IMG/VR virus record: IMGVR_UViG_3300027736_001324
Location: 199,710 to 263,709 of that record
Reading direction: 5' to 3' (one strand)
DNA length: 64,000 nucleotides
Numbering within the stretch: position 1 is the stretch's first letter; every line of letters starts with the position of its first letter. Shown in pieces: positions 3,345-60,442 of the stretch. The position numbers were made by a program, and so were the translations under genes. The notes under the pieces are model-generated. The model was given only the letters and a program-made list of their open reading frames with translations, ran no database searches and had not been told where the DNA came from.

Positions 3345-4907
3345 ATGAGATTTAAGCAAATAGTAGAAAATTCAACAACAGCAGGATCAGTCGCAACCGT
3401 AGCACAGCCTATGATGACTCAAACCCGTGAAAGTGTAGATGTCAAGGGACTAAAGCCCGTAAAACAATTAATGAAGGGCACTAAAAAGAAAGGTCCCTAC
3501 GCTAATAGTATTGTTGAAGGAAAAGTTAAAGAACTTATCAGCGATTTAAAAAACTTAACTTCTTATGATTTTGAAAAGAAACACAAACAATCTAAGGCTG
3601 ACGTTAGAGCCGACATGAAGAAAGTCACCGAAGATGATCTTTCAGAACAAGACTTAATCGTTATCCCAGGACAAGGTAGACTAAGAGGTACTGGATTTAC
3701 AAAGCATGACCCTGATCGTGCTGAACATGAAGGTCAAACACTAAAGAATAGTTTACACACTATCATTCGTTTAGCAACTCATTTAGACAAAGAATTAACA
3801 GTAAGAGATAACTTCCCAGAATGGGTGTCAGAGAAAGTCGGTTCAATCAAGGGTGACATGCTTTCTGTAATGAACTATATAATCAGCAGCCAAGAAATGC
3901 GACATGATCCAGATACTATAAATGAACTCAGTTCTGCTCTGTTACAAACAGCCGCACAAGCTGCTACAGACAAACGTAATCAAGCAATGGATCCCGAGTT
4001 ACATAATGCATTAGGTGGCGGCTATATGAATCCATTAGCAAAACATTATGATAATGTATCACAAAAAATGGACAATAGGGCAGCACAAGTAAAAAGAAAA
4101 GAAACGATACAAAATATCGCTTCTAAAATCGCTTCTCCGGCGGTGATGCGTAAGATGGGTATGAATGAAGGCTCACAACGAGTTGATTCAATTGTTACTG
4201 ACGCATTACGAGTAATGAAGGGTCCAGAAGTAAGTGATGCTGTACTAGCATTAAAGAGAGTATTAGGCGACAGAGCATATAATGAGCGCCGCGGCTTTTA
4301 TAGTTTCTATGTTGATCAAATACATGATATGTACGGTCAGCAAGGCGTGGCGGAAGGCGAGTTAGAAGAAGATTTAAGCCGTAGAGGATTTTTAAGAGGC
4401 TTGGGCGCGGCAACGTTAGGTGCTACAGCATTAGGTGCTGCAAGTAAAGCACAGGCAAGTCAAGATTTAGGAAACGGATTTGTTTTAACCACTGTTGACG
4501 TTTTTGGTGGAAAATTTAAAGCAGTATTAGATACACAATCTGATATACATTATTTGCCAAATCGTCACGAAGGCGGTGGCGCTATTGTTAGAAGCATGGC
4601 TCCTTTTATTATGATAAAGAACGGTCAGACAAACACTGCTATGAATGTTGGGCCAGCTGTTCAGGCTGCATTAAAGAAAGCTGGACTATTGAAAGGTGTA
4701 GAAGAAGGTGTTAAAGAAGGCAAAATTGACTTTGCTAAGAAATTACAAAAGAATGTAGATAATCATAACAAAGCTGTAGTACAAACTAAAAAAGCTGTAG
4801 GTAGCAGAATTTCTGACATTGGCGCCGGCGGCAAAGAATACAATGTAAAGACTGATGCTGCATGGGATGCTGCTAAGAAAAAAGTTAGTGAAGGTTTAAG
4901 GAAATAA
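3345..4907 (+). CDS. Probable virion-internal polyprotein with an internal twin-arginine signal-like segment
   Basis: 520 aa. N-terminus MRFKQIVE; GATAAATA late-type promoter at 3314-3321; QGVAEG linker followed by LEE-DLSRRGFLRG...KAQA. Confidence 0.75.
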   Translation: MRFKQIVENSTTAGSVATVAQPMMTQTRESVDVKGLKPVKQLMKGTKKKGPYANSIVEGKVKELISDLKNLTSYDFEKKHKQSKADVRADMKKVTEDDLSEQDLIVIPGQGRLRGTGFTKHDPDRAEHEGQTLKNSLHTIIRLATHLDKELTVRDNFPEWVSEKVGSIKGDMLSVMNYIISSQEMRHDPDTINELSSALLQTAAQAATDKRNQAMDPELHNALGGGYMNPLAKHYDNVSQKMDNRAAQVKRKETIQNIASKIASPAVMRKMGMNEGSQRVDSIVTDALRVMKGPEVSDAVLALKRVLGDRAYNERRGFYSFYVDQIHDMYGQQGVAEGELEEDLSRRGFLRGLGAATLGATALGAASKAQASQDLGNGFVLTTVDVFGGKFKAVLDTQSDIHYLPNRHEGGGAIVRSMAPFIMIKNGQTNTAMNVGPAVQAALKKAGLLKGVEEGVKEGKIDFAKKLQKNVDNHNKAVVQTKKAVGSRISDIGAGGKEYNVKTDAAWDAAKKKVSEGLRK

Positions 4908-4908
4908 T

Positions 4909-7584
4909 ATGAAAACAAATGAATTTTTAACAGAATTATCTAACGACAAGTTAGGAAAGTACAAAACCGCTGCAGGAAAAGATGCTACTGCTGCTGATAA
5001 AGCTGGTAATTTTAAGCGCGGCAATAAGCGTATGAGTGGCATTACCAATGCAACTAAAAAAGAATTTGCAAATGATGCTAAAAAGGTATCAGAAAGTAAG
5101 CAATTTGTTTTAAATGAATCTTTATTAATGGAAGATCCCATTTATCGTCAATTTAAAAGTGTAAGTAAGTATATTGCTGAACGTAGACTTAGCAAACAAG
5201 AAATCTATCAAATATTTGCTGATGCTGAAACCGGCATGACAAGTAAAGATACTGGTGCTAATCGTACAATGCTTGGCCGTGGTAAAGATGTAACAGGTAA
5301 AGCAGTTACCAGTGTTAAAGATGCTGTATCAGGTGTTTTAAACTCTATACAATCTTCTGCTCCAGTAGCAGCCGTTGATGTTGCATATGATCAAGCTACA
5401 GCTGCCTTAGGAAAATTAACCGGCGGAGATAAAAGCAAGATAATGAAATCTATCATTGGATATCGTAATCTTGCTAAACAATATCCTAAAACAGCAGGAT
5501 TTGCTAAAGCAGCATTGGTTGCTGCTGTAGGACTTGCTACCGGTGGAGCAGGACTACCTGCTATTGCAGGTTTAACTTATGCACTTGATTCTGCAATTAG
5601 AGGCGATAAGTTATCAAGTGTAATTGGTAAGGGTGCCGGCGCTGCTGCGTTAGCATACGGTGGACAAGCTGCGGCACAATATGCTCAAGGTGGCGCTGAT
5701 ATTCCAGGAGCAAATCCACATCAACTTGATCCGTCACAAATGCAACAAGGCCCAGGTGGTGGAGGAGGTGGCGGTGCAGGTGGTGCTGATATTCCTGGAG
5801 CAAATCCACATCAATTAGATCCATCACAAATGCAATCAGGATCCGGTGGTGCTGATATTCCTGGAGCGAACCCGCATCAATTAGATCCGTCACAAATGCA
5901 ACAAGCAGCAGGCGGTTATAAGGAAGTAATAAAGACAGTAGCAAAAGGAGATACATTAAGTAATATTGCTCAACAATACGAAACTAGTGTTGAAGCATTA
6001 ATGAGAGCAAATCCTCAAATAACAAATCCCGATGCTTTAGCAATAGGAACTAAACTTAATATACCTCCAGTAAATGCTGATACTTATCTGCAAGGTGTAG
6101 GTACTGCTGCTGATACTGCTGCCAAAACTGCGTCTGGCGCATATGATAGTGTACCGGCTGCATTAGGTAAACAAGCAGCAGCCAATCGTGCCGGTGTTAC
6201 TGAAAGTATTTGGAAAAATCATTCTCCTAAACTAGATAAAAACATTATAGAATCTATTAATTTTAAAAAGTTATCAGCATATGATTTAATAGACAAGAAA
6301 ACTACTGCGTTCAACTGGGCATTAAATGAAAGTATTGGTAATAAAAATAGAAATATAAATTTAACTACAGTAGGGGTATATACTATATTTGAAAATGTTG
6401 ACCGTTACCGTCTTGCTGTAATGGAAGTAGCAGGAGTTCCGGGCAGCACTCGTCCAGAGCAGTATCGTCCAGATGAGCCGGAAGGTAAAGGTAAGGAAAG
6501 CAAACCAGGTTTAATTGGTAGAGGACTTAATTGGTTAGACAAAACTGCCGGCAAAGTAGGCGGCGCATTAAGTAATTTTGGACATCAGTTCACTACAAAC
6601 GTTACAAAAGAAAAACTAAAAATGAATTGGACTCAAAAAGGTGAGCCAAGTGATTCAGATGAAGTAGCGGCTTTTATGAAAAGTCAAGGTGTACCAGAAG
6701 ATGTAATTTCAACAGTATACACAAAGATGGGTCTACCTTTTACTATGACTCCCGCTGCAGCCGCAACTGCCCCGGCGGCAAACACAGGATCAACAAGTGC
6801 TAATACTAGTGGTGCTGGTGCAGGCGCATTTAGTTCAATGGCAAATCAATTACCTAAATCAACTAATACATCATCTACTGGCGGCACAACTACAAATACA
6901 TCAACTGGATTAACACATACAAGCAAAGCAGTTGCACCAACATCAGGTGGTGCAGGTGGGACAAGTAGTGTAGGCGGTATGTCACAACCATCACAGCCTA
7001 ATAGTCCTAGTCAACAACAAGCAGTGGCTCGCACAGTAAGACAACAGATTGATGACATTATGCATACCATAATGACTCAACATAATGACGACCAACCATC
7101 ATTAGTAAAATATTTGCGCCAACGTCTTGATAGTAGTTTTCCCGGTGATGCTACAAACGCAGCAGCACCAAAAAGAGCAGCACCTAAAAAAGCAGCACCT
7201 AAAAAAGCAGCGCCCAAAACAGCAGCACCTAAAGGCAAAAAACCTGACAACACAGTAGCGATGCCAAAACGTGAAAAATTCCGTATAGGCAAAGACGAAA
7301 TCAAACCCGATAATCCCATGTATGATAAAATTAAGGCCGCTAGCGGGACAAATGAATCATTAGGATTAAACTATCCAGAAACATATGAACAAACTAATGA
7401 TAAATTTAAAAGCAAAGGTCAACGTAGAGTTGCTGCACTAACCAATGAAGAAGAAAAACAACGTTTAGATCCTAAATGCTGGACTGGTTATAAAAAGCAA
7501 GGCACTAAGATGAAGGGTGGTACTAGAGTTAATAACTGTGTCCCAATAAAAGAATCAGCAATATTACAAGGCTTAAGAGGATAA
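4909..7584 (+). CDS. LysM-domain, low-complexity virion-associated protein
   Basis: 891 aa. N-terminus MKTNEFLTE; LysM (VAKGDTLSNIAQQYETSVEALMRANPQITNPDALAIGTKLNIP); Gly/Ala hydrophobic stretch; C-terminal CWTGY...NCVP motif. Confidence 0.8.
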   Translation: MKTNEFLTELSNDKLGKYKTAAGKDATAADKAGNFKRGNKRMSGITNATKKEFANDAKKVSESKQFVLNESLLMEDPIYRQFKSVSKYIAERRLSKQEIYQIFADAETGMTSKDTGANRTMLGRGKDVTGKAVTSVKDAVSGVLNSIQSSAPVAAVDVAYDQATAALGKLTGGDKSKIMKSIIGYRNLAKQYPKTAGFAKAALVAAVGLATGGAGLPAIAGLTYALDSAIRGDKLSSVIGKGAGAAALAYGGQAAAQYAQGGADIPGANPHQLDPSQMQQGPGGGGGGGAGGADIPGANPHQLDPSQMQSGSGGADIPGANPHQLDPSQMQQAAGGYKEVIKTVAKGDTLSNIAQQYETSVEALMRANPQITNPDALAIGTKLNIPPVNADTYLQGVGTAADTAAKTASGAYDSVPAALGKQAAANRAGVTESIWKNHSPKLDKNIIESINFKKLSAYDLIDKKTTAFNWALNESIGNKNRNINLTTVGVYTIFENVDRYRLAVMEVAGVPGSTRPEQYRPDEPEGKGKESKPGLIGRGLNWLDKTAGKVGGALSNFGHQFTTNVTKEKLKMNWTQKGEPSDSDEVAAFMKSQGVPEDVISTVYTKMGLPFTMTPAAAATAPAANTGSTSANTSGAGAGAFSSMANQLPKSTNTSSTGGTTTNTSTGLTHTSKAVAPTSGGAGGTSSVGGMSQPSQPNSPSQQQAVARTVRQQIDDIMHTIMTQHNDDQPSLVKYLRQRLDSSFPGDATNAAAPKRAAPKKAAPKKAAPKTAAPKGKKPDNTVAMPKREKFRIGKDEIKPDNPMYDKIKAASGTNESLGLNYPETYEQTNDKFKSKGQRRVAALTNEEEKQRLDPKCWTGYKKQGTKMKGGTRVNNCVPIKESAILQGLRG
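5689..5901 (+). repeat. Three 57-bp intragenic repeats encoding GGADIPGANPHQLDPSQMQ
   Basis: Copies start at 5689, 5779 and 5845, with synonymous third-position differences and Gly-rich spacers. Confidence 0.95.
7162..7233 (+). repeat. 15-bp tandem repeat encoding AAPKK/AAPKR/AAPKT
   Basis: gcagcacc(a/t)aaaa.. units repeated about 5 times; histone-H1-like basic tract. Confidence 0.9.
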
Positions 7585-7586
7585 TT

Positions 7587-8027
7587 ATGTTAACAGAAGA
7601 TTTAAAAGTGTTATTGGCAAGTGTTAACTCATTATCCATCAAAGCACAAAACTTTCATTGGAATGTAGAGGGAGATAACTTCCCTCAATATCACGAATTC
7701 TTTGGCAACTTCTATGAAGAAATATACAGTTCAGTAGATAAAATTGCTGAATACATTCGTACATTAGACAGTTATAGTCCTGGCAGCTTAACACGCTATG
7801 CTGAATTAACTATCATTCAAGATCAACTTAAGATTCCACGTGCTGAATTAATGTTTGCTGAATTGTATGAAGATAATGCTAGAATGATTGATTTGCTTAA
7901 TCATTGCTTTGCTTCTGCTACACAAGAAAATAAACAAGGTATCGCTAACTTTATTGCTGAAAGGTTAGATGCTCACGAAAAACATCAATGGATGGTTCGT
8001 AGTGTTCTAAAGAAAGCCCGTGCATAA
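7587..8027 (+). CDS. dps: Dps/ferritin-like DNA protection protein
   Basis: NFHWNVEG.NF..YHEFF...YEE....D.IAE ferroxidase signature; 146 aa. Confidence 0.93.
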   Translation: MLTEDLKVLLASVNSLSIKAQNFHWNVEGDNFPQYHEFFGNFYEEIYSSVDKIAEYIRTLDSYSPGSLTRYAELTIIQDQLKIPRAELMFAELYEDNARMIDLLNHCFASATQENKQGIANFIAERLDAHEKHQWMVRSVLKKARA

Positions 8028-8581
8028 TGAGAGCAAGAGAGTTTTTATCTGAGTCCTATCGCTCGGGTATAAATGAAGAACTCAGGGTCGATGTGCCTAA
8101 CGAAGAATGGTTACAAGACGCAATTGACTATGCTAAAAGTAAAAGTCCCGATCGCAATGGTCTACCTTACATGGGAAAGACCACTGCTACAGTTAGGAAC
8201 GTTGTGGTTCCGGTCAGCATATTAAGACGGATACCAGGCATGCGTCAAGAGCAATCAAAGGTAAGACACCACGATCTTGCTGCTATTAGAAAAATTATGC
8301 ACACTACAGGTAAACTGCCATTACACGGACATACTGGACAAGAATATAAACCTTTTATTAATGTAGCATATGATGGTAGTGCTTGGGTCAATGAAGGTAA
8401 TCATAGGATCATGGCTGCGGCCGAACTTGGTTGGGAGTCATTGCCAGTGGAAATTTCATACTTTGACGGCGGTGAAAGAATCAAGTCAGGTCCAATGTAT
8501 CCGGGTAAGATTGGGCTTGCAGAAGCAATGGATCAAGGAACTAGATGGACCGGTGATGAACCATATAGACAAACGGATTAA
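8027..8581 (+). CDS. ParB/Sulfiredoxin-like domain protein with capsid-targeting-like N-terminus
   Basis: MRAREFLSE start; VNEGNHRIMAAAELGWESLPVEI motif. Confidence 0.75.
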   Translation: MRAREFLSESYRSGINEELRVDVPNEEWLQDAIDYAKSKSPDRNGLPYMGKTTATVRNVVVPVSILRRIPGMRQEQSKVRHHDLAAIRKIMHTTGKLPLHGHTGQEYKPFINVAYDGSAWVNEGNHRIMAAAELGWESLPVEISYFDGGERIKSGPMYPGKIGLAEAMDQGTRWTGDEPYRQTD

Positions 8582-8587: not shown

Positions 8588-9403
8588 ATGAAAAAATTAT
8601 TAGCATTAACATTACTCGCAGTATCATTTACCGCATCAGCTTGGACACAACGAGCACCAAATCCACCTCAACAATGTCAAGTACACGCCCCATATGGATT
8701 CCCTCAAACGGCATTAGCGGTACAGCCCATTTGTCGTCAAGCATATCTAGTTGGTTATGATCCTGTCGCAAAATTACCAAAGTATGTAACATATGAACTT
8801 CTTCCGCAAAACGCACTAGGATGCGTGGGTAGAACAAATGCTTTTGCTGCTGATCAATCTATACCAAACGGACCTAAACCAGATGACTATGCGGGAACAG
8901 GCTACGATAAAGGACATATGAGCCCAGACGGTGATCTATCTTGGGATGTTCAAGTTGAGTTTGAAAGTTTCTTAATGACTAATATGGCTCCGCAAGCTGG
9001 TTCATTGAATCGTGGCATATGGAAATTGTTAGAAACAAGTGTGCGTGGTTGGGCAGTTCAACGCAATCAAAGTTACACAGTTTATGTTGGTGGAGTATAT
9101 AATGCACAAGATAAGAAAATCGGCAACGGTGTTGTTGTTCCGCATGGTTATTATAAAATTGTTATCAATAATCAAACTAAAGAAATAGCAGGATGGGCAT
9201 TCCCCCATGTTGCTCCTTATCCTAACTTAGGCAATGATTTATCTAAGTTTAGATTATCCGTAGTGCAGATTCAACAAGTAGCAGGTGTACATTTTGGATT
9301 CCCTCAGGGTGCTAAAGAATTGTCTCCGGGCCAAGAATGGCCAGTTGACTTTGGTGCTCTTACAAAAGCTAAGAGAGCCAAGTGTGGTAAGGATGATGAT
9401 TAA
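8588..9403 (+). CDS. Secreted DNA/RNA non-specific endonuclease (NucA/EndA-type His-Me finger)
   Basis: Signal peptide MKKLLALTLLAVSFTASA; YDKGHM, NMAPQ..LNRGIWK.LE motifs. Confidence 0.92.
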   Translation: MKKLLALTLLAVSFTASAWTQRAPNPPQQCQVHAPYGFPQTALAVQPICRQAYLVGYDPVAKLPKYVTYELLPQNALGCVGRTNAFAADQSIPNGPKPDDYAGTGYDKGHMSPDGDLSWDVQVEFESFLMTNMAPQAGSLNRGIWKLLETSVRGWAVQRNQSYTVYVGGVYNAQDKKIGNGVVVPHGYYKIVINNQTKEIAGWAFPHVAPYPNLGNDLSKFRLSVVQIQQVAGVHFGFPQGAKELSPGQEWPVDFGALTKAKRAKCGKDDD

Positions 9404-9967: not shown

Positions 9968-9985
9968 ATATTTGATAAATACATA

Positions 9986-10570
9986 ATGCTTACCGAACAC
10001 ATCATTATTGAATCCGCAGCAATTGAATTAGCGAAAAGATTGCCGTCATTAGAAAAACATGACTACAATACCATTGACAAATTGATGCAGGATATCGCTA
10101 GTAAACACCGTATTACTGGTAAAGCATTACATGACTTGTTTGTACATAAATTTAGAAAATCACCTGATGATTGGGTTAAAAGTAAATTAGATGAACAAGA
10201 TAGTGAAACAGACTTCTTAGCAGATAACCCAATAATGCAAAAATTCATTAAATGGGCAAGTCAAAAACTTAATCTTCAATCTACACCCAAATTTGAATTC
10301 AGTTACAATACTGAAGAAGCACAGGCAGGTCATCATACTGGTCGTCATTCCGAAAACGACAATAGCGTTTGGGTATACGTTGCTAATCGTAATATGGTTG
10401 ATATTATGCGTACCGTTTTTCATGAATTGGTTCATGTCCGTCAAGGAGAATTGGGTATGATTAAACCAGGTGACAGTTATCCTGGTAGCCCAATTGAAAT
10501 GCTAGCAGATATGGGTGCGGGCAAATACATGAAAGTATTTGGCAAAGATCATCCAGAAATCTTTCAATAA
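9986..10570 (+). CDS. Zincin-like (HExxH) metallopeptidase domain protein, probable virion cargo
   Basis: RTVFHELVHVRQ with downstream E (PIEMLA); GATAAATA at 9974-9981; N-terminus MLTEHIIIES. Confidence 0.7.
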   Translation: MLTEHIIIESAAIELAKRLPSLEKHDYNTIDKLMQDIASKHRITGKALHDLFVHKFRKSPDDWVKSKLDEQDSETDFLADNPIMQKFIKWASQKLNLQSTPKFEFSYNTEEAQAGHHTGRHSENDNSVWVYVANRNMVDIMRTVFHELVHVRQGELGMIKPGDSYPGSPIEMLADMGAGKYMKVFGKDHPEIFQ

Positions 10571-10596
10571 AATACATTCTATGCTATAATGCATAG

Positions 10597-11205
10597 ATGC
10601 TTAAACTACTCTTTCCATTACCAAAAGATATTGTTGTCGCACTTAGCGGAGGCGTTGACTCTGTTGCTATTACAGATTTCCTTTCTCAAAAACACAATGT
10701 AACTTGTGCTTTCTTCCATCATGGAACAGAGAATAGCGAACGTGCATTAGAATTCGTTGCACACTTCTGTACCGAACGCAATCTTCCACTTATGATTGGG
10801 ATGATTAAAAATAGTAAACCCAAAGAACTCAGCACAGAAGAACATTGGCGTAATGAACGCTATGACTTCTTAGATAGTTTTGGTAATTCATTAGGACCAA
10901 TCATTACTGGTCATCATTTAGATGACTGTGTAGAAACATATGTCTGGTCATCACTTCACGGACAACCAAAAGTTATCCCATCAAAACGAAACAATGTTGT
11001 ACGTCCGTTTCTAACAACAAATAAAAGTGAATTCACTAATTGGTGCAAACGTAAATCTATTGATTGGTGTCACGACAATAGTAACGATGGCACAAAATAT
11101 ATGCGTAACTATGTAAGAACACATCTAATGCCACACGCATTACATATTAACCCAGGCCTGCACACTGTGGTTAAAAAGATTGTAGAAAATAAGCAAAATG
11201 TTTGA
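10597..11205 (+). CDS. tilS: tRNA(Ile)-lysidine synthetase-like PP-loop ATPase (N-terminal domain only)
   Basis: ALSGGVDS PP-loop, RNERY, TGHHLDD.VET, VRPFL, D.SN...Y.RNYVR. Confidence 0.88.
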   Translation: MLKLLFPLPKDIVVALSGGVDSVAITDFLSQKHNVTCAFFHHGTENSERALEFVAHFCTERNLPLMIGMIKNSKPKELSTEEHWRNERYDFLDSFGNSLGPIITGHHLDDCVETYVWSSLHGQPKVIPSKRNNVVRPFLTTNKSEFTNWCKRKSIDWCHDNSNDGTKYMRNYVRTHLMPHALHINPGLHTVVKKIVENKQNV

Positions 11206-11253: not shown

Positions 11254-11511
11254 ATGAGTAAAATGTTTACTGGAGAGCAAAAGATTAAGTTGACTCAACT
11301 TATCAACGAGGGCATGGTAGTCCTACATGAAATCGATACCCTACGTGAGGGGCTAAGTGATACTGTGAAGGCTATCGCAGAAGAACTGGATGTAAAGCCG
11401 GGGATTCTTAAGAAGGCAATATCTGTTGCACACAAAGCAAGTCTTGGTCAAACAAATGCTGACCACGAGGAATTAAATACTATCCTTGAGACAGTGGGTA
11501 AAACAATTTGA
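11254..11511 (+). CDS. T4 DsbA/GapR-like dsDNA-binding protein
   Basis: 85 aa helical protein, pattern similar to T4 DsbA (A.EEL.V....KK.I..AHK); directly upstream of the polymerase. Confidence 0.65.
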   Translation: MSKMFTGEQKIKLTQLINEGMVVLHEIDTLREGLSDTVKAIAEELDVKPGILKKAISVAHKASLGQTNADHEELNTILETVGKTI

Positions 11512-23558: not shown

Positions 23559-24032
23559 ATGGCAAAATATATTTCAACAAAGACTTACAAGCAGATAGGT
23601 CCAGTAGCTTATCGTCAATGGCGTGCAGATAGTCATTGCAATCTAATACATGGCTACGCACTTTCATTTCATTTTGAATTTGAAGCTGATACATTAGATG
23701 CCCGTAATTGGGTAACAGACTTTGGTGGACTAAAGCCTCTAAAATCTGTATTAGAAGATTGGTTTGATCATACATTACTAGTCGCACAAGATGACCCAAT
23801 GCGTGAACATTTACTTGAGTTGGGTAGACTTAAGCTAGCAAAGATTACAGAAGTTGAAAAGACTGGCTGTGAGGGTATTGCTGATTTCTTATACGAATAC
23901 ATTAACACTATTCTATTGCCTAGCTTTGGTGCTAGTGAAGCAGAACGTGTTTGGTGTAGCAAAGTAGAAGTAAGAGAAACAGATGCTAACATGGCAATGC
24001 GTGTTGGGCATAGAGAAGATAGGGAGTTTTAA
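23559..24032 (+). CDS. queD: 6-carboxy-tetrahydropterin synthase (QueD/PTPS)
   Basis: RQW..DSHCNLIHGY, DFGGLK, FDHTLL, GCEG, VEVRET. Confidence 0.88.
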   Translation: MAKYISTKTYKQIGPVAYRQWRADSHCNLIHGYALSFHFEFEADTLDARNWVTDFGGLKPLKSVLEDWFDHTLLVAQDDPMREHLLELGRLKLAKITEVEKTGCEGIADFLYEYINTILLPSFGASEAERVWCSKVEVRETDANMAMRVGHREDREF

Positions 24033-24825: not shown

Positions 24826-25674
24826 ATGGCAAAATTAAAAGTCGCAGAATTATTCTATAGCATTCAAGGTGAAGGTCGCTATATGGGCGTCCCTTCTGTC
24901 TTTCTACGCACATTTGGATGTAACTTCAAATGTGCAGGGTTTGGTATGCCTAAGGGCGAACTAAGCAAAGAAGTAGAAGATATCGCTAGTCGCATACATT
25001 ACTATACTGATTATAAACAACTACCATTGGTCAGTACAGGCTGTGATAGTTATGCTAGTTGGGACCCAAGATTCAAAGACTTAAGTCCGATGCTTGAAAC
25101 AGATAGTATTGTTGATAGCATTATGGATATGCTACCACACAATCGTTGGTTGAGTGAACATCTTGTTATCACAGGCGGCGAACCATTATTAGGTTGGCAA
25201 CGTAGTTATGTTGATTTGCTTTCACATGAAAACATGCGCGGATTACAAGAATTAACTTTTGAAACTAACGGAACACAAGAATTGCAACAAGACTTAAAAA
25301 TCTTTTTACATAAATGGTGTATCAGTCGTAGCATGGGTGCAATAACATTTAGCGTCAGTCCTAAACTAAGTATCAGCGGAGAGAAGTGGGAAGAAGCAAT
25401 AAGACCTGAAGTTGTATATGAATATACTCAAGTGGGTCATGTATATCTTAAATTTGTTGTAGCAAACAAACAAGACGTAGAAGAAGCACAAGAAGCGGTT
25501 AATGAATACAGTAAGCGTGGCTTTAGAGGTCATGTATATTTGATGCCTTGCGGCGGTGTTGAAAGTTTATATAATATGAATGCTAGAACAGTTGCTAATG
25601 AAGCAATGCGTTTAGGCTGGCGTTATAGTGATAGACTTCAGGTACCTCTTTTCAAGAACGCATGGAATACTTGA
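24826..25674 (+). CDS. queE: 7-carboxy-7-deazaguanine synthase (radical SAM)
   Basis: ELFYSIQGEG, VFLRTFGCNFKC..GCDS, ITGGEPLL, FETNGT, SVSPKL. Confidence 0.93.
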   Translation: MAKLKVAELFYSIQGEGRYMGVPSVFLRTFGCNFKCAGFGMPKGELSKEVEDIASRIHYYTDYKQLPLVSTGCDSYASWDPRFKDLSPMLETDSIVDSIMDMLPHNRWLSEHLVITGGEPLLGWQRSYVDLLSHENMRGLQELTFETNGTQELQQDLKIFLHKWCISRSMGAITFSVSPKLSISGEKWEEAIRPEVVYEYTQVGHVYLKFVVANKQDVEEAQEAVNEYSKRGFRGHVYLMPCGGVESLYNMNARTVANEAMRLGWRYSDRLQVPLFKNAWNT

Positions 25675-27562: not shown

Positions 27563-28380
27563 AAAAAGTATTAATAACAGGTAACAGTGGTTACATCGGT
27601 AGTCATCTTAGTAAGATGCTACGCACAGATTATCAAATATATGGATTGGATATTAATCCATCACAATACTCCGTTACCGATCATTATCAACTCAATATCA
27701 ATAAGGTGTTTAATATTGATATGGAATTTGACGCAGTAATTCATTTAGCAGCATTAGTTAATGTTAGTGAAAGTGAAAGAATGCCCATTCAATATTACAT
27801 CACTAACTTAAATGGTACAATGAATGTTATCAATAAAGTAAAGACAAAGAACTTTATCTTTGCTAGCACTGGTGCTGCACAAGATTGTGAAAGTGCATAT
27901 GGTATCAGTAAACGTGCTGCTGAGGATGTGGTGCGTGAGTATTGTACAGTACACAATCCCAAAGATTACACTATCTTTAGATTCTATAACGTAATCGGTA
28001 GTGATGGGTTTGCGCCAACTAATCCAGACGGATTGATGTATAACCTGATGAAGGCTAAAGAGAGAGGCGAGTTTACTATCTACGGTACTGACTATGGTTC
28101 AAGTGACGGTACTTGTGTGCGTGATTACGTTCATGTTAATGAGATATGTGACGCATTATCTAGTGCTATTGAAAAGCCAAGCAATCAGATAGAATGCTTG
28201 GGGCATGGAGTTGGACATTCAGTTAGAGATATTGTTAATCTATATAAAAAGGTTAACAACGTTGAATTTCTAGTAAAGCACGGACCAAGAAGAAAGGGTG
28301 ACTTAGCAGTATCTGTATTAGATAATGTGTCACCCTATATGAAAGAGTTATACTCTTTGGAAGAACTACTTAAGGTCTAA
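27559..28380 (+). CDS. NAD-dependent epimerase/dehydratase (GalE-like)
   Basis: ITGNSGYIG, HLAA, FAST, YGISK, FRFYNV, RDYVHV, RRKGD. Confidence 0.93.
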   Translation: MKKVLITGNSGYIGSHLSKMLRTDYQIYGLDINPSQYSVTDHYQLNINKVFNIDMEFDAVIHLAALVNVSESERMPIQYYITNLNGTMNVINKVKTKNFIFASTGAAQDCESAYGISKRAAEDVVREYCTVHNPKDYTIFRFYNVIGSDGFAPTNPDGLMYNLMKAKERGEFTIYGTDYGSSDGTCVRDYVHVNEICDALSSAIEKPSNQIECLGHGVGHSVRDIVNLYKKVNNVEFLVKHGPRRKGDLAVSVLDNVSPYMKELYSLEELLKV

Positions 28381-28752
28381 AAACTTTATTTGGTTTGTTG
28401 AAAACACAACATACCAAACATCATCTCCCTCATCGTGTTCAGCAATGATACTATCATATCCGTCTGCTATTAATTCTTCACGTAGTTCTAAATAATCTTC
28501 TTTCTCTAGTCCTACTAACTCATCCATTGTTGCTTCATATGTCTTGTTCATGGTCAATGACGCAGATATGATATATTTTCCGTATAGTTTTGCTTCACGA
28601 ATAGAAGTAGTAAAAAAATGTCCTAGTACAGCATTTGGATCTCCTGTACTAGTTCCTAGCGTAGCATTATCAAATGACGAGAATTTATTGTTAGTACCGT
28701 GATAGGCAACAACACCCGAACTACTTTCAGCAATAAATTCTCTTGCTCTCAT
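28366..28752 (-). CDS. ADP-ribosyltransferase-like domain (ART-PolyVal type) with capsid-targeting-like N-terminus
   Basis: MRAREFIAE; AYHGT..F..F; GHFFT...A..YG; GYDSII. Confidence 0.72.
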   Translation of the reverse strand: MRAREFIAESSSGVVAYHGTNNKFSSFDNATLGTSTGDPNAVLGHFFTTSIREAKLYGKYIISASLTMNKTYEATMDELVGLEKEDYLELREELIADGYDSIIAEHDEGDDVWYVVFSTNQIKFLDLK

Positions 28753-28753: not shown

Positions 28754-30262
28754 TTAGTGTCTTAACAATAGTGTACTTAATACACCAGGATCGTTAGCAC
28801 TAACATCACCTTCGCCCGGAGCAACAATAACATTGTACTTCATTCCAGTTGGGATTGAATTTCTCTTAGCCATATATTCAGTATAACTTAAAATACTTGA
28901 AGCACTGATTCCATATTCTGTAGCAATACGTTGTTTCATTTCTTTAAGTGCGGCTTCATCAGCAGGTTGCCATGCTCCGTCATCAGTTTTCTTCAAGTTA
29001 CCCTTCTCATCCTTAGCTAACAAGTCATAGAATAGTTTCTCTGGAACAATACGACTATTCTTTGTTGTATCTAATTTAGGGTCTTGCGCCTTTATTTTCT
29101 TCTCTTGCTCAGTGTTAGCACCTTCGCTCCAATTGATAATAAAGTTGTCTGGTTTCTTAGCTAATGCTGCTCCAGCCATCTTAGTGTAAGCATAGAACTT
29201 AACATCAGGGTGTTTAGCAGCCATCTTTAATGCCATGTCTAAATATTCTGGACTAAAGAAGTCACCGGCATCATGCCAACGAACTGTTGTTTGCCAACCA
29301 TCAGGGAATTTCTTATCACCCTTTGCTCCTGCACTTGCTTCTTTTGATATCTCACTACTTAATTGATTAAAGAATCCATCAGGATCATTCAACAGATATG
29401 TTAATATACGACCATCACTTTGCCATGCTGCTTTAAACTGAATCTTACCGCCCTTCATAGCAAAGCATTCTACTTTACATGAACCTGCACCCGGGCAAGT
29501 ATTAACAATGATTAATTTATTGGTTTGTTCATCAAGTGCAATTCCTACTAATGCCGCAAATCCAACATTGAAGAATTGTTCAAACTCTCCGTTACTATGC
29601 TTCATCTTTTCATTTTGCTTTAATAATGATTTAGGACGAATTGCTAATGTTTGTTTAACTGCATCTTCATCATATGTTTTACCATCCGGACTCATGTAAG
29701 TAACTACGCTACTACGATGGATGTAGGGCATTTTGTATTTGTCACCTTTGGTCTTGCCAGTAGTATACTTTTCGTTACCTTTTTTATCTATTTTAACATT
29801 ACCGCTTTTATCTAAATCAGGAGTACCAACGATACGCTTCATGTAATCTTGAAATTCTTGGCTATCCAAATCACGGGTTTGTGCTGGTAGTTTAGTTGCT
29901 TCATCTAGCCCAGATAGACTACGAATTCTATCTAAGTGTTCCGAGCCTTCCGCCACACCTTTGCGATAATCTGGAAATCCAAACTTGCGATAGTATGCTA
30001 ATGCGTGACCAAACATCTTTTTGTATTCTTCAGTACCCTTTTTGTAACCTTTTGTAGCCAACTCATTTTCAATATGACGAACCATTGGCATCTCTGCTTT
30101 TAGTAATTCTGGAGCACCTTCCGCCACACCTTGTTCTGATTCTTCATCAGGTTTTGAATCACCTGCACTAGCAACAAATTGCTGAGGTGTCATAATCTTT
30201 ATGCCACTAGGGGCTCCTGGCATCTTTGGCTCTGCGCCCTCTAATAGTTCTTTAAAGTTCAT
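28754..30262 (-). CDS. Polyprotein with Gp88-like (radical-SAM-like Cys cluster) domain
   Basis: MNFKELLEG; two GVAEG linkers; TCPGAGSCKVEC; VRWHDAGDFF; FYAYTK. Confidence 0.7.
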   Translation of the reverse strand: MNFKELLEGAEPKMPGAPSGIKIMTPQQFVASAGDSKPDEESEQGVAEGAPELLKAEMPMVRHIENELATKGYKKGTEEYKKMFGHALAYYRKFGFPDYRKGVAEGSEHLDRIRSLSGLDEATKLPAQTRDLDSQEFQDYMKRIVGTPDLDKSGNVKIDKKGNEKYTTGKTKGDKYKMPYIHRSSVVTYMSPDGKTYDEDAVKQTLAIRPKSLLKQNEKMKHSNGEFEQFFNVGFAALVGIALDEQTNKLIIVNTCPGAGSCKVECFAMKGGKIQFKAAWQSDGRILTYLLNDPDGFFNQLSSEISKEASAGAKGDKKFPDGWQTTVRWHDAGDFFSPEYLDMALKMAAKHPDVKFYAYTKMAGAALAKKPDNFIINWSEGANTEQEKKIKAQDPKLDTTKNSRIVPEKLFYDLLAKDEKGNLKKTDDGAWQPADEAALKEMKQRIATEYGISASSILSYTEYMAKRNSIPTGMKYNVIVAPGEGDVSANDPGVLSTLLLRH

Positions 30263-32739
30263 TTCTTATTGTTCCTAATGTATTGTTCAGCAAGCATTAC
30301 TAATTCATGTAGTTCTTCAATGCTTTCGCAATGCCATCTACGCAAACTTTTATTTATATTGCTATTTGGATCGTGTGCTGTTTTTGCACCAGTACGATGT
30401 TTCTTCATTCCACGCATTCTAGCACAGAATGATTTACGACGGGCAGCGGCTTTGCTACCTTTTTTAAGTTTGCTTGGTTTAGTTGTTACTGCTGTTTGAA
30501 TCTTGCTGCCTGGATGACTACGGCGATAACTGGCTACACTCTTTTTACTCATCCCACCTGCACGTTTATTATTGTGCTTTGACCAATTCTCGCCCTCATC
30601 AACTTCTTTCTTTGCCATGCCGATACCATCACAAGCACCGCATTTATACTTTTTAGCGCCCGGTACGTCATTAGCAGGAAGAATTTTTCCGTCAGGTGCT
30701 TTCCATAAAGTACCACGACCGTTACATCTTTTACAACTAGTATTAGGGTTCTTTACAGTGGCACCTGGCATGTAGTCACTCTTGCTGAAACCGCCTGGCA
30801 AGCCTTCCGCCACACCTTGCTGACCCGGCACTGTATCAACAATGTTTATCATTTTATCAGGAACTATTTGTACAGGAACATTGCCGTTGTATCCGGCGGC
30901 TTGGTATGCGATAAATCTATGATTCCCATCTATTACAAAAAGTTTACCCTTGTTATTCCAAACAACTAACGGACCTAATTTCCCATTTTGTTTTAGTTGT
31001 GGTAAAAGATGGTTATTGACCCATTGAGCAACCTTTGGATCCTTCATTGACTTACCATTTTCCCACATTTGTAATTTATTAAAAGGTGCCTCAGTTACTG
31101 GCAAACTTTTCTTTATCCTGTCATCAACAGTAGCACCTTTATAAGCAGGATTTGTATAGATAGTTACTAGTTGCTGTTCCAAGCCTTCCGCTACACCTTG
31201 CTGTTGTTCTGCCTTTACAAATTGATTGGGTCTTGGCATATCTAACCTGCGTGGATCATTCATTATGGCAGGATCTTGCATTAATTTGCTTTTAGGATTA
31301 ATCCAGAATCCAACCATTGTTCCTTTTAAGGGTAATGAACCTTTTGGAACAACTACTGCTTCTTCAAATTCACCACCTGCTTTGGCAGTAGGTTCAGCAT
31401 ATTTTGCTTTGCCTTTTGCGTTAGTTCTTGCCATTGGGTCTGTGTTCTGTGACCGTGCTTCACCGTCTTTTTTTAGATACGGGTTAAATGCTAGACCTTT
31501 GATATTTGTACTTTGACTTGTACCTAGTGTTTTGAAATTGCTTTCGACTGCATTACGATCTAAAACTAGTATTGCATCTCTACCAATGCCAGCCATTTGA
31601 TTGCTTGCATTTGATCCACTGGCATAGCCCCAATCTCTGGTCACGCTTACTGTAGGCAGTTTAGTCTGAGCCGAGGTTGCTGCCTGCGGACTAGTTGCTG
31701 ATCGGATACTACCGGACGATAGCATTCCTTTAAGACCGTTTGCATCCGTAGCATGATAAAGATAGTTTCCGCCTATACCTTCATTTAGCCCTTCCGCTAC
31801 ACCTTGCTTGTCAATACTTCCCCGTATACCGCATTTAGCACAATGATATTGTGTTAGCGTTGGGTGTTCTTTTTTCTTTACAGGACCATGGCAATGTGGG
31901 CAGGTACCTGTGGCCATTGCCTTGACTTCTTTACTCATATCTTCTTTGGAGCCTTCCGCCACACCTTTTGATGAAGCAGTTGGAGATTGCAGTGCCCTAG
32001 TTTTAACTCCAGGCATGCCACCTAATGTCGCTAATTTTTTAACCCAGCCTTCAGCGTCAGTATCATTAAGAGATGTAACTACAGTGCCATCGGGGTCAAT
32101 AGAATCTATACCAGTAAGTTTATCGCTAGCATATCCTGTATTATCAAAATAATGTCCAGGTACTGTACCAACTTTATTAGAACGATCTAAGCGAGTTTTA
32201 TACTCAGCATCCCCTTTTTGTTTGTGTACCTCTAAACCTTTAGAAATTGCTGCACGAACTTGTTGTTGTTGTGTGGTTTCAGTAGAGCCTTCCGCCACAC
32301 CTTGTTCTTCAATATTAGGGTTATTGATTTGTTCTGCTACACTATTCAATTTGTCATTGCTAACTGTAACAAAACTATACATCCAACCATCTAAACTAAC
32401 ACCCTTATCTAATTGATTCTTAATATGTATAGCATTTTTAATAATTTCACGAATCTCGCCTTGAGCCATTCCATCAATTTGCTCATCTTCCATAGCATAA
32501 CCTTCGGTTTTGGGCTTCTTCCCAGCCTTTTTCATGGCAATGGCAATTGCGGCCTGTCGTTTTGGGTTAGCCGCTTCATCTGTTGCTGACTTTTTTAATG
32601 CATCCGCTGTTGGAGCACCTTTACTTCCGGGCTTACGCATATGTTCACCGGAACCATTCTTGATTCGGTCACGCTTGGCATGTATGTTTGCCCATAACCC
32701 AGGCTTTTTGTTTTCGGATATAATTTCACTAAATCTCAT
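30259..32739 (-). CDS. Modular polyprotein: Zn ribbon, ART-like, ParB/Srx-like and DnaJ-type Zn finger modules plus conserved basic termini
   Basis: MRFSEIISE; five GVAEG linkers; CPHC..CAKC; YLYHAT..VSVTRD..EFEE; VIDGNHRF; CKRCNGRG..CGACDGIG; RRKSFCARM. Confidence 0.8.
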   Translation of the reverse strand: MRFSEIISENKKPGLWANIHAKRDRIKNGSGEHMRKPGSKGAPTADALKKSATDEAANPKRQAAIAIAMKKAGKKPKTEGYAMEDEQIDGMAQGEIREIIKNAIHIKNQLDKGVSLDGWMYSFVTVSNDKLNSVAEQINNPNIEEQGVAEGSTETTQQQQVRAAISKGLEVHKQKGDAEYKTRLDRSNKVGTVPGHYFDNTGYASDKLTGIDSIDPDGTVVTSLNDTDAEGWVKKLATLGGMPGVKTRALQSPTASSKGVAEGSKEDMSKEVKAMATGTCPHCHGPVKKKEHPTLTQYHCAKCGIRGSIDKQGVAEGLNEGIGGNYLYHATDANGLKGMLSSGSIRSATSPQAATSAQTKLPTVSVTRDWGYASGSNASNQMAGIGRDAILVLDRNAVESNFKTLGTSQSTNIKGLAFNPYLKKDGEARSQNTDPMARTNAKGKAKYAEPTAKAGGEFEEAVVVPKGSLPLKGTMVGFWINPKSKLMQDPAIMNDPRRLDMPRPNQFVKAEQQQGVAEGLEQQLVTIYTNPAYKGATVDDRIKKSLPVTEAPFNKLQMWENGKSMKDPKVAQWVNNHLLPQLKQNGKLGPLVVWNNKGKLFVIDGNHRFIAYQAAGYNGNVPVQIVPDKMINIVDTVPGQQGVAEGLPGGFSKSDYMPGATVKNPNTSCKRCNGRGTLWKAPDGKILPANDVPGAKKYKCGACDGIGMAKKEVDEGENWSKHNNKRAGGMSKKSVASYRRSHPGSKIQTAVTTKPSKLKKGSKAAARRKSFCARMRGMKKHRTGAKTAHDPNSNINKSLRRWHCESIEELHELVMLAEQYIRNNKK

Positions 32740-32757: not shown

Positions 32758-32803
32758 TTGACTTTATTGCGTAATTCTGTTACACTATATGTATTATTTA
32801 TCA
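32758..32803. promoter_or_regulatory. Divergent promoter region: sigma70 promoter (+) for uvsE and late-type TAAATA (-) for the cargo operon
   Basis: TTGACT(32758)-17 bp-TACACT(32781); minus-strand GATAAATA at 32795-32802. Confidence 0.65.
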
Positions 32804-57476: not shown

Positions 57477-57498
57477 ATAACTAACAATATAAACTACT

Positions 57499-57804
57499 AT
57501 GTCTAAAACAGAAACAAAAATTAAGATCAAGCCTAACCTTGCATTATCCGAGCCTCCGTTGTTCAAAATCATTTATATCAATGATAATGTAACAAGTATG
57601 GAATTTGTCGTAGGTAGTTTAATTGATTACTTTAATTATAACCAAGACACTGCACAAACGATTACACATAATATCCACGAAGAGGGTAGTGCAATTGTTG
57701 CTGTTTTACCTTATGAGATTGCAGAACAAAAAGGTATTGAGGTTACACTTGACGCACGTAGTCAAGGATTCCCATTACAAGTGAAAGTTGAAGCTGAAGC
57801 CTAA
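57499..57804 (+). CDS. clpS: ClpS N-degron adaptor
   Basis: P..FKII..ND.VTSMEFV, IHEEG, AEQK, A....FPL. Confidence 0.9.
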   Translation: MSKTETKIKIKPNLALSEPPLFKIIYINDNVTSMEFVVGSLIDYFNYNQDTAQTITHNIHEEGSAIVAVLPYEIAEQKGIEVTLDARSQGFPLQVKVEAEA

Positions 57805-58838: not shown

Positions 58839-58909
58839 AATTTTCTCCTTCATTGTATTTACTATCGGGTAACAATTTTATATTTTTTTCTTCAGATAAA
58901 TACTAAACT

Positions 58910-60442
58910 ATGCGTGAACTTATTAATATTATTGAACAACTGAATGAAAGCACTGGACTAGCTGGACGTAAACCCGGTGACGTTTTTAAAAACGAAAACG
59001 GTGAGGAGGCAATATTTAATGATATTAAATTCTTCCCCGAAGGTGGAGGAAAATACTCACCCGAAGAACTAGATCAGGCTCTGGGTGAAATTGAACAACA
59101 AGTTCCAGGAATTGTTTGGCAAAACAGTCGTTCTGGACGTACAGGTGGATTTGCAATAATCTCATTCGGTAACTTTGTTATTGGCCAATATCTACAGGAA
59201 GTTAAACCTTCTATTACTGATAACAAAGTATCAAATACATTTACAGTAGATGGTGCAACTTATAAGTTCGGTGGCAAGGCTGCTGCCAAAGCTGATGCAG
59301 GATTAAGTCCACAAGATTTGTTAACGGATAAACTTGATTTAACTATTCCAAAGATAATGAATCAACTTGCTAGCAGTCTAGGAACTGATAACCCACTATA
59401 CTCTTTAGCACATAATATCGCAATGGGACAACCATTGCCCATAACATTTGATGCTCCAGAGGGAGTTAGTTTTACTGCGTTCCGTGATTATTTCTGTGAA
59501 ATATTACAACCAATAGCATTGCAAAAAGGTCAATACACGGGTAACGCAGGTGAGGCTGCAAATAAGTTTTTAGGTGGATCATTCCAAAAAACATTAATCA
59601 GTTTTGATGATAGCAAAACCGCAGGACTAAGCGATAGTGTTATGTCTACTAGAGATGGTCGTAGCGTACTGGTAAGTACTAAAGGTGGCAAAGGTGCTAC
59701 CGCTAGCGCATCAAACTTAATTGACCAAATTGATAAGATTGCAGAAACGCCAGATGGTGGAAAATTCTTAAACAAACACAAACAAATAGTTGACTTACTA
59801 CGTGAGATACAAGATGCAGGGCAAGCAGGTGCTCCATTAATGTTGGGTGTAAGATATGGTATCATCAGTCCTGATGATGCTGAAATGATTAGAGCATTTA
59901 AAAAGTTAAGTCCAGTTAGCTTAGACAATCTTGGTCAACTTGGTCTTAGTGAGAACTTAACAAAATTGGCACAATCACGTAACACAGATGATCCAGATAA
60001 TGTAAACTTATATTATCACTTGATGGCAGCAGTGGCACATAAAGCTGCTGAGAAAGTTAATGACAAAACTAAATTCAGTTCTGCTGCTGCTGATATATTA
60101 AACAACGGTGCATTAGTGCAAATGTATACCAAAGCAAATGAGGGCAAAGGTAAATGGACTTTGCAAGAATTCAATACAGTTTATCCAGGTAAAAGCATCA
60201 AGGGTGTTTATCTCTCAGCAGGTAAAACATATTACTCTACTGGTATAAAGGGTAACTATACATTCAAAATTGATAAAGGTTCAGGTAAACCCAAAGATGA
60301 TGAAGAAACAACTACCACACCTGCTGCAAGAGTAAAACGTGAAAAGAATGCAGGCAAAGATGAGTTAGCAACATCAGCAAGAGATATCATTAATCCTGTT
60401 AATAAGCCAAGAGAAACTGGCACTAGGACTAAACGTAAATAA
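58910..60442 (+). CDS. Probable virion cargo protein with possible PD-(D/E)xK-like domain
   Basis: GATAAATA at 58895; MRELINIIEQLNE start; EIL...LSDS...VSTK. Confidence 0.6.
   Translation: MRELINIIEQLNESTGLAGRKPGDVFKNENGEEAIFNDIKFFPEGGGKYSPEELDQALGEIEQQVPGIVWQNSRSGRTGGFAIISFGNFVIGQYLQEVKPSITDNKVSNTFTVDGATYKFGGKAAAKADAGLSPQDLLTDKLDLTIPKIMNQLASSLGTDNPLYSLAHNIAMGQPLPITFDAPEGVSFTAFRDYFCEILQPIALQKGQYTGNAGEAANKFLGGSFQKTLISFDDSKTAGLSDSVMSTRDGRSVLVSTKGGKGATASASNLIDQIDKIAETPDGGKFLNKHKQIVDLLREIQDAGQAGAPLMLGVRYGIISPDDAEMIRAFKKLSPVSLDNLGQLGLSENLTKLAQSRNTDDPDNVNLYYHLMAAVAHKAAEKVNDKTKFSSAAADILNNGALVQMYTKANEGKGKWTLQEFNTVYPGKSIKGVYLSAGKTYYSTGIKGNYTFKIDKGSGKPKDDEETTTTPAARVKREKNAGKDELATSARDIINPVNKPRETGTRTKRK

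Follow-up and report, generated by a model that had tools for sequence, protein, structure and literature searches.

How might a giant phage supply its host with a whole set of small enzymes from only a few genes? The question is raised by the 64,000-nucleotide stretch analysed here (the window), which is the last 64 kb of contig JGI 3300027736 Ga0209190_1000002 (contig 199,710-263,709). Several of its open reading frames (ORFs) encode proteins that start with a short leader peptide, and in some of them small modules are joined by a repeated linker, (Q/K)GVAE(G/D). A first-pass annotation had described these genes as a family of capsid-targeted cargo proteins, cut by a prohead protease and injected into the host. 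The core of that logic (a T4-type leader, cutting after Glu, late expression and enzyme cargo) agreed with every comparative test that we ran. The likeliest reading, which on sequence evidence we consider moderately probable, is that the leader directs each chain to the capsid, that the prohead protease would cut at leader and linkers, and that the pieces would be co-injected with the DNA.

The DNA polymerase (encoded at 11508-14213) shares 43-48% identity with its counterparts in Sinorhizobium phage Phosso, Agrobacterium phage Atu_ph07, Klebsiella phage RaK2 and related phages, which places the source phage by sequence as an uncultured jumbo member of the T4 superfamily, in the RaK2/Atu_ph07 group. 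When the two polyprotein regions were searched at near-identity on the DNA level, none of 50,697 phage records matched; no cultured close relative was available from which annotation could be borrowed. The loci that we examined are labelled with L-numbers (L023, L010, L070 and so on), and the main ORFs of the window with letters.

N-terminal leaders

The eight N-termini flagged in the first-pass annotation were each present exactly as written: MRFKQIVE (3345), MKTNEFLTE (4909), MRAREFLSE (8027), MLTEHIIIE (9986) and MRELINIIEQLNE (58910) on the plus strand, and MRAREFIAE (28752), MNFKELLE (30262) and MRFSEIISE (32739) on the minus strand. The leaders end in IVE, LTE, LSE, IAE, LLE, ISE, IIE or LNE, which belong to the gp21-type (L/I)-x-Glu class. 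The T4 capsid-targeting sequence, MKTYQEFIAE, is a short leader of the same type as MRAREFIAE and MKTNEFLTE, likewise ending in hydrophobic-x-Glu. From the flagged N-termini we derived a strict pattern, ^M[RKN]xx[EQ][FIL][FILV]x?E, and scanned it over the 101 ATG-started genes of the window. It matched six of them (3345, 4909 and 8027 on the plus strand; 28752, 30262 and 32739 on the minus strand) and no other. The leaders at 9986 and 58910 fitted only a loose pattern, ^M.{3,8}[LIV].E, which was also fitted by 11 of 93 other genes. The proposed T4-type leader thus holds for six genes and only loosely for the remaining two. The consensus over more than 100 relatives was M-(R/K)-(F/I/A)-(T/S/N)-(E/D)-(I/F)-(I/L)-(S/T)-E, and hydrophobic-x-Glu was found within the first 12 residues of 85 of the 120 relatives of the 826-amino-acid (aa) ORF G among the matches listed.

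The linker as peptide and as DNA

The (Q/K)GVAE(G/D) peptide occurs in ten in-frame copies, confined to ORF A (ending at 3292), ORF B (3345-4907), ORF F (28754-30262, minus strand) and ORF G (30259-32739, minus strand). In the DNA the linker is a repeat of 18 nucleotides (nt), CAAGGTGTGGCGGAAGGC, of which the window holds 10 copies with at most two mismatches, against 0.00 expected. On the plus strand the word lies at 725..742 (QGVAEG), 1094..1111 (two mismatches, QGVAED) and 4341..4358 (one mismatch, QGVAEG). On the minus strand it lies at 29945..29962 (one mismatch, KGVAEG), 30116..30133 (one mismatch, QGVAEG), 30802..30819 (exact), 31183..31200 (one mismatch), 31789..31806 (two mismatches), 31951..31968 (one mismatch, KGVAEG) and 32287..32304 (exact). 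The linkers of the window use codons that are rare in this genome, GCG in 10/10 and GTG in 8/10 copies, compared with a genome usage of 7% for Ala and 11% for Val (p = 3e-12 and 1e-6, respectively).

The exact 18-mer was found in more than 120 IMG/VR contigs with a G+C content of 34-52%. For the codon counts we used 168 further linkers in these loci, which had not been the basis for choosing them, and the same codons prevailed: GGT in 93%, GTG in 81%, GCG in 77% and GAA in 88%. The terminase genes of six lineages carrying the 18-mer have 34-75% protein identity and saturated synonymous sites, and the codon at conserved Gly, Val or Ala residues is shared in just 19-45% of cases; the identity of the linker DNA is therefore far above background. 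A 12-nt core of the linker was in frame within long ORFs in 264 of 266 copies, the other two being at locus ends, and no copy was intergenic or in another frame. The 18-nt word is therefore tied to its translation.

On the protein side, QGVAE was the most frequent 5-mer among the relatives of ORF G. Gln stood at P5 in 203 of 322 sites, with E, K, N, R and S also seen, and the residues around the linker were biased as well, both at P5 (Q/K/E) and at P1ʹ (G/A/D/S). Linkers that vary (GVTE, DVAE, GITE, GMAE) keep Glu at P1 and V, I, M or L at P3. The earlier list of internal junctions (VAE, LNE, ISE, LTE, IDE, VGE, LEE and VDE) can be sorted accordingly. VAE is the near-invariant linker with its ten copies; LNE, ISE and LTE are found repeatedly ahead of the ASGYIPSEK..DPR(F/Y) module that they have in common; the VDE of ORF G (residue 715) falls at a cluster of homology breakpoints; IDE, VGE and LEE are plausible but unsupported.

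Shuffling of modules at the linker

ORF G has more than 1200 metagenomic relatives, all of mosaic make-up, which are typically 80-96% identical to it over only 10-30% of its length. GVAE linkers were present in 95 of 120 relatives among the matches listed, up to 11 per protein, and the edges of the homology blocks coincided with linkers both in protein and in DNA. The module that stands behind the leader in ORF G recurs in locus L099 inside an ORF F-like protein, with a linker on either side, and in some relatives the leader passes directly into a linker (MRATEFIVEGVAEGKL). Leader Glu and linker Glu can therefore stand in for each other at the left edge of the same modules. Assembly chimeras were considered as a source of the breakpoints and rejected, as 18 nt is shorter than the usual assembly k-mers and the same joints recurred in many independent samples. 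The pattern thus points to the linker words as sites of in-frame module recombination, a mechanism that we infer from it. Both this shuffling and the nucleotide-level conservation of the linker had been overlooked in the first-pass annotation.

Twin-arginine signals and possible internal cleavage

In ORF B, a twin-arginine (Tat) type signal, GELEEDLSRRGFLRGLGAATLGATALGAASKAQA (4356..4457, plus strand), begins directly after QGVAE. Its motif consists of SRRGFLRG followed by LGAATLGATALGAAS and KAQA, in a module that reads GELEEDLSRRGFLRG; the Pfam TAT_signal match in this module was weak and under the cut-off (E = 0.092). We searched for the motif [SDT]RRGFL[KR]G across the family and the examined loci and found 13 distinct contexts. 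In 12 of them it lay 2-9 residues past a GVAE-type site or an N-terminal leader: ten followed an internal site (GVAE, GVTE, DVAE or EVEE), and two stood directly past a leader (MRATEFVTE↓MDRRGFL.. and MRASEIIAE↓DLTRRGFL..). The remaining one was at the true N-terminus of a stand-alone ORF. Twin-arginine signals (S/T-R-R-x-F-L-K, then a hydrophobic stretch and a closing A-x-A) function only at a free N-terminus. This placement would make sense if leader sites and linker sites both create one, and it is our best argument for cutting, albeit an indirect one. The linker, with Glu at P1, a hydrophobic residue at P3 and a replaceable Gln, appears to fit the rule of the T4-family protease and not that of a 3C-like Gln↓Gly site. 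T4 Alt is itself cut at ITE-6 and LTE-619.

The same observations bear on the alternative that the proteins are packaged by means of the leader, that only the leader is removed, and that they then act as long multidomain polyvalent proteins in which QGVAEG is a flexible joint conserved for recombination. Recombination alone would explain the nucleotide conservation and the breakpoints at linkers; classical polyvalent proteins are thought to act, or to be delivered, as large multidomain chains, the N4 virion RNA polymerase is packaged unprocessed, and some linker-bearing proteins have no leader. However, Tat signals behind internal linkers, placed as they are behind leaders and at true N-termini, would be useless unless freed. 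For a mere flexible joint there would be no need to retain the P1 Glu and a hydrophobic P3, nor to obey a rule used elsewhere by the same protease family. We regard this alternative as unlikely, although it survives better than those discussed below.

Head genes of relatives and late-type boxes

The two loci L023 and L010 contain genes for a portal, a gp67-like acidic core protein (MNKFEQLIE..), a gp21 protease, a scaffold and a major capsid protein; identity to the RaK2 counterpart is 46% for the protease and 59% for the capsid protein, and RaK2, too, encodes gp21. After the capsid gene come a GIY-YIG gene and then a linker-bearing polyprotein gene behind a CTAAATAA box. When the head proteins of T4 and RaK2 were compared with all examined loci, matches were obtained in L010, L023 and L115 only and none in the examined stretches of the long jumbo contigs. 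The GIY-YIG endonuclease gene between the major capsid and polyprotein genes (L023:7870-8592, L010:3241-3987) might bear on the movement of cassettes.

In L070, L049, L118 and L067, the gene that follows the terminase gene encodes a domain of ~330 residues with linker-joined modules attached. The domain is homologous to RaK2 ORF112 and its counterparts in PA5oct and CBB, all of which carry the annotation of virion structural protein. In L047 (5647-6636) the ORF112 homologue stops at ..NQVVEGT, and the remainder is a separate gene. The natural end of the homologue, ..NQV(A/V)EG, is itself linker-like and is the exact point at which the extra modules are fused in L049, L070, L118 and L067. We also considered the terminase-adjacent genes of L047 and L070 as a protease-free, podovirus-like portal, scaffold and capsid set, which would have spoken against the linker as a protease site; this was rejected, the PHROG matches being to a virion structural protein, gp32 and UvsX of RaK2-like type. 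Related genes are also found in the late cluster of cultured cyanophages. In cyanophage P-TIM68, a 427-aa multi-module DUF6321 protein behind CTATAAATA is encoded just upstream of the terminase, and in cyanophage S-SKS1 a protein starting MKNFKQFLSE.. lies between g16 and g17. A late or virion-gene neighbourhood was thus seen in L023, L010, L115, L070, L049, L118, L067 and the cyanophages, and not in the window.

The four TAAATA late-type boxes reported earlier were confirmed, GATAAATA being found at each place. The box at 3314..3321 (plus strand) lies 24 nt 5ʹ of the ATG at 3345, that at 9974..9981 (plus strand) 4 nt 5ʹ of the ATG at 9986, that at 58895..58902 (plus strand) 7 nt 5ʹ of the ATG at 58910, and that at 32795..32802 (minus strand) ~55 nt upstream of the three-gene operon G-F-E. 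Its placement was not random, as it preceded 4/4 leader-bearing transcription units compared with 3/93 other genes (Fisher p = 1e-5). NTAAATA boxes are also found in RaK2, upstream of ORF090, ORF091, ORF112 and the genes for scaffold, capsid protein and terminase; before the capsid gene the sequence reads TGATAAATAA, and the TGATAAATA box upstream of this major capsid gene is the same as at 3314. The strong early promoters of the source genome are different (TTGAC-N17-TATAAT), and a scan for sigma-70-type promoters showed none that stands out upstream of the four leader-bearing units. The sigma-70 promoter and terminator scans were at chance level, so that the only hint on timing from them is that no strong early promoter precedes any of the units.

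Several TAAATAC boxes stand only 2-10 nt from a start codon (9975 for the start at 9986, 17695 for 17704, 52076 for 52087, 58896 for 58910 and, on the minus strand, 58862 for 58853 and 43182 for 43171). They leave no space for a Shine-Dalgarno sequence, and these late mRNAs may be leaderless or have very short leaders. Another box, TGATAAATAC, precedes a 55-aa ORF starting MAQIVEDVIV in the source contig, 6.9 kb upstream of the window (L123:3080-3247), which may encode a further small late or packaged protein.

These neighbourhoods also bear on a second alternative, according to which the genes encode cytoplasmic, non-virion polyproteins, produced in the course of infection, that stay whole or are the substrate of a different protease (a host enzyme, say, or the HExxH protein at 9986-10570), and the N-terminal peptide is a start context or a degradation or localisation signal. 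The genes of the window adjoin DNA polymerase and nucleotide-metabolism genes instead of head genes, the HExxH protein is encoded nearby, and the late timing rests on prediction. On the other side, the leader is much like the experimentally defined T4 capsid-targeting sequence and the N-termini of the gp67-type core proteins of the relatives; in relatives, the genes have those for capsid protein, protease or terminase as neighbours or are joined in one ORF with a virion structural protein; and the domain set is that of injected polyvalent proteins. The argument from neighbourhood is weak, because in RaK2 the capsid and DNA polymerase genes are only ~5 kb apart. We therefore consider a purely cytoplasmic role rather improbable. 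Least probable of all, and by our estimate very doubtful, is that the 18-nt word is itself the functional unit (a recombinase or homing-enzyme site or an RNA-level signal) and the GVAE peptide incidental: the conservation of synonymous sites far beyond the genomic background and the GIY-YIG gene beside the polyprotein genes of L023 and L010 would suit it, but nearly all core copies are read in one frame inside long ORFs with none elsewhere, DNA variants retain the peptide class (GVTE, GITE, DVAE), and the flanking P5 and P1ʹ residues are biased too.

Modules of the proposed cargo proteins

ORF A (1..3292 in the window, plus strand) is a multi-module gene of 1151 aa in full, which starts 163 nt before the window, behind a terminator and a CTAAATAT box. 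Its modules are a nucleotidyltransferase-like N-terminus, a CHAP-like domain (very weak, E = 0.019), a dCMP-deaminase-like domain (E = 8.2e-12), DUF6934, a GNAT-like domain (weak, E = 0.007-0.009), DUF6886 and a C-terminal ASGYIPSEK module; the E values are those of Pfam and PHROG matches. When the ORF was cut into pieces, DUF6934 scored 25.4 bits, just under the Pfam cut-off of 27, and DUF6886 27.6, just over it; in a scan of the whole ORF both were under. The junctions are two QGVAE linkers and ISE↓A, LNE↓A and LTE↓A.

ORF B (3345..4907, plus strand, 520 aa) consists of the leader MRFKQIVE, a 329-aa module, QGVAE, the twin-arginine module and a short basic tail. In ORF C (4909..7584, plus strand, 891 aa), the leader MKTNEFLTE is followed by LysM (E = 1.1e-13) and a C-terminal CWTGYKK module; GGADIPGANPHQLDPSQMQ occurs three times in tandem in this protein, which also includes an AAPKK-rich tract like that of histone H1. 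ORF D (8027..8581, plus strand, 184 aa) has one ParB-like (GNHR) module behind MRAREFLSE, and ORF I (9986..10570, plus strand, 194 aa) combines the loose leader MLTEHIIIE with a zincin-like HELVH motif. The N-terminal module of ORF I is common to the PHROG polyprotein family phrog_10346, which ends in DUF6321. A Dps/ferritin-like gene (7587-8027) and an Endonuclease_NS gene with a signal peptide (8588-9403), both without a leader, lie in the same late-type operon as three leader genes.

On the minus strand, ORF E (28366..28752, 128 aa) has the leader MRAREFIAE and an ART-PolyVal ADP-ribosyltransferase domain (PF18760, E = 4.7e-14). ORF F (28754..30262, 502 aa) has MNFKELLE, two small modules parted by QGVAE and KGVAE, and a GP88 module (E = 6.4e-25). 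ORF G (30259..32739, 826 aa), behind MRFSEIISE, strings together seven modules with five (Q/K)GVAEG linkers and one EVDE↓G junction; they include NYLYHAT, a ParB-like module with a weak match (phrog_1033 E = 2.9e-5; Pfam E = 0.022), Zn-ribbons and DUF6321 (Pfam E = 2.9e-9). NYLYHAT is the commonest module. In its structural model (mean pLDDT 73), the fold matches were all ADP-ribosyltransferases (DarT, PARP, SopF, TreTu), the best at E = 0.27, and only 8 residues aligned when its profile was compared with that of the ART-PolyVal ORF; since no fold match fell below E = 0.27 and the profile alignment was so short, we call it weakly ART-like only. The claim of enzyme cargo gained support from the ART-PolyVal, ParB-like, GP88 and DUF6321 domains, as they occur in injected polyvalent proteins.

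The earlier assignment of the gene at 58910 to the polyproteins was not borne out. ORF H (58910..60442, plus strand, 510 aa) is a conserved, non-mosaic protein without a GVAE linker, and its more than 685 full-length relatives are of constant size. Its leader of 13 aa is variable (MREFINIIEQLTE or MRDILDKLETLTE), ends in L(T/N)E and is followed by an invariant STGLAGRK. A structural model (mean pLDDT 78) gave no meaningful match in the PDB and, in BFVD, matches to uncharacterised phage proteins only. ORF H looks like a conserved single protein with a propeptide-like leader.

Proposed model and its difficulties

In the reading that we prefer, the genes would specify virion cargo of a RaK2-like jumbo phage of the T4 superfamily. 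The T4-type leader of ~9 residues would bring each separately translated chain into the scaffolding core of the prohead, where a gp21-type protease, cutting after Glu in hydrophobic-x-Glu, would take off the leader. The same protease would cut each (Q/K)GVAE↓G linker and release several small proteins from one chain: ADP-ribosyltransferases, ParB-like nucleases, a nucleotidyltransferase, a deaminase, GNAT-like enzymes, Zn-ribbon and DUF6321 modules and a LysM protein. The pieces would remain in the head and reach the next host along with the DNA, and modules with a twin-arginine signal would then be exported to the periplasm by the Tat system of the host. At the DNA level, recombination between the 18-nt words would shift modules in frame between genes and between phage lineages; each swap would therefore give a new cargo set that should stay cleavable.

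A further step, which we put forward as a tentative possibility, is that QGVAEG is a dual-code element. The peptide would be the site of the prohead protease and the 18-nt word an in-frame recombination joint for effector cassettes, integron-like at the level of domains; any exchange would leave a cargo that can still be cut and packaged, and the Tat signals would be masked until cleavage.

Several points weigh against the proposed packaging and cleavage. The chief internal difficulty is that ORF A and about one quarter of the relatives (e.g. those starting M..VIMPGGFHPFHA) carry linkers without a recognisable leader. The N-terminus of ORF A, MNLKELNSFKLSD, falls inside the nucleotidyltransferase domain, so that this 1151-aa protein has linkers without a clean leader and fits the proposed cargo family only in part. 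Such proteins imply either another targeting route or linkers that are never met by the protease. No protease, capsid or scaffold gene was found in the window, nor in the preceding 16.6 kb (183,137-199,709 of the contig), where only genes for ClpB, DnaJ, a clamp-loader-like protein and fibre-like proteins were seen; in the window itself, the cargo genes have replication (DNA polymerase) and nucleotide-metabolism genes as neighbours and not head genes. The capsid cut predicted by alignment with T4, YLKE↓NASAGS in L023 and ALFE↓SATAG in RaK2, is hydrophobic-x-Glu and not GVAE. The count of GATAAATA in the window (7, with 5.6 expected) is at chance level, and the late promoter, uncalibrated by any late gene of this genome, is putative, as is the late timing. 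A further possible role of rare codons at the borders of domains is to make translation pause. Finally, packaging, cleavage and injection are steps that we infer, and it is relatives and family membership that tie these genes to gp21.

Relation to known systems

Each part of the system has a precedent: leaders in T4, prohead proteases specific for Glu, polyvalent proteins, and shuffling guided by motifs. A full-text literature search for QGVAEG or GVAEG returned only alpha-synuclein and unrelated papers, and searches on polyvalent proteins, prohead proteases, polyproteins and ejection proteins turned up no account of this linker and leader in combination. Nor did we find in the literature a description of the leader-linker grammar, of dual peptide and DNA conservation of a linker, or of masked Tat signals.

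With IPI-III and Alt of T4, the family shares unrelated cargo behind a common leader, ADP-ribosyltransferase cargo (Alt), an upstream TAAATA box and a hypervariable repertoire. However, the T4 genes carry one cargo each, whereas here up to 7-10 modules are found per chain with a dedicated, repeated internal site. Only here is the linker kept as DNA, do some cargo proteins carry export signals, and are there thousands of mosaic variants in uncultured RaK2-like phages.

For polyvalent proteins, the proposal was that fusion to MuF or portal brings about packaging and that a metallopeptidase built into the chain does the processing (Iyer, Burroughs, Anand, de Souza, Aravind 2017, PMC5512222); neither a common linker (the word 'linker' is absent from the text) nor a T4-type leader was described there. 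Common to both are many effector domains per chain (ART-PolyVal, ParB-like nuclease, zincin-like HExxH, lysozyme/LysM-type), shuffling, predicted delivery with DNA and late-gene neighbourhoods, the last seen here in relatives. Among the signature domains, ART-PolyVal is well matched here (E = 4.7e-14), the ParB-like match is weak and the peptidase is represented by the HELVH motif only. The nine proteins had no MuF or portal domain among their Pfam and PHROG matches, and the sole HExxH is in a separate small ORF. In contrast to polyvalent proteins, short standard peptides, which we propose to be read by the head-assembly machinery, would serve here as targeting and processing signals.

In phiKZ and SPN3US, too, giant phages pack many proteins (ejection and inner-body proteins), and the prohead proteases, gp175 and gp245, cut after Glu in a three-residue motif (S/A/G-x-E, A-x-E) and can do so several times per substrate. 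These systems differ in phage lineage and in P3 preference; propeptides are removed instead of a string of enzymes being separated, and there is no repeated linker. PeSL (promoter/stem-loop) cassettes of T4-type phages (Arbiol et al. 2010, PMC2839356; Comeau et al. 2014, PMC4122927) also have short border DNA words that apparently guide viable shuffling of accessory modules. PeSLs, however, are ~100-bp intergenic units of early promoter and stem-loop that flank whole genes, whereas the linker is 18 nt long, lies in frame within ORFs and doubles as a peptide signal. By analogy, the linker would work like a PeSL but is not one. In the polyproteins of RNA viruses (3C/3CL, Gln↓Gly), too, one product is cut at a repeated short site, and our linker contains Gln-Gly. 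Yet 3C-like sites need an invariant Gln at P1, while here it is Gln that is replaceable and Glu that is constant, and no 3C-like protease was seen. Moreover, the viral polyproteins yield replication machinery, whereas the products here would be accessory cargo.

Other features of the window

Early-type promoters with the -10 box inside a short palindrome, such as TCTATGCTATAATGCATAGA (10578-10597), were also found upstream of 23559 and of the DnaJ gene (L129:9198); these palindromic promoters resemble the PeSL cassettes. The window further encodes a PP-loop ATP_bind_3 protein (10597-11205), a QueD-like PTPS (23559-24032) and a radical-SAM QueE-like protein (24826-25674). Together these look like a preQ0/7-deazaguanine pathway, possibly for DNA base modification.

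Significance

The internal proteins of T4 and the polyvalent proteins are the two known routes by which phage proteins arrive with the DNA to disarm the host as it is entered. If the proposed reading is true, the present family unites both routes by a simple grammar (one leader, one linker, any module), with thousands of mosaics in environmental giant phages. It would then provide a sequence rule with which injected anti-defence and host-takeover proteins can be found in uncultured phages without recourse to folds. It would also be a natural standard system for loading several proteins per gene into a capsid, of use for T4-type delivery platforms, and it would show clearly that one short coding sequence can be under selection as peptide and as DNA at once, a matter relevant to the evolution of modular proteins by recombination. 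The Tat modules would be the first hint of injected phage proteins that are re-routed to the periplasm, exported by the new host itself.

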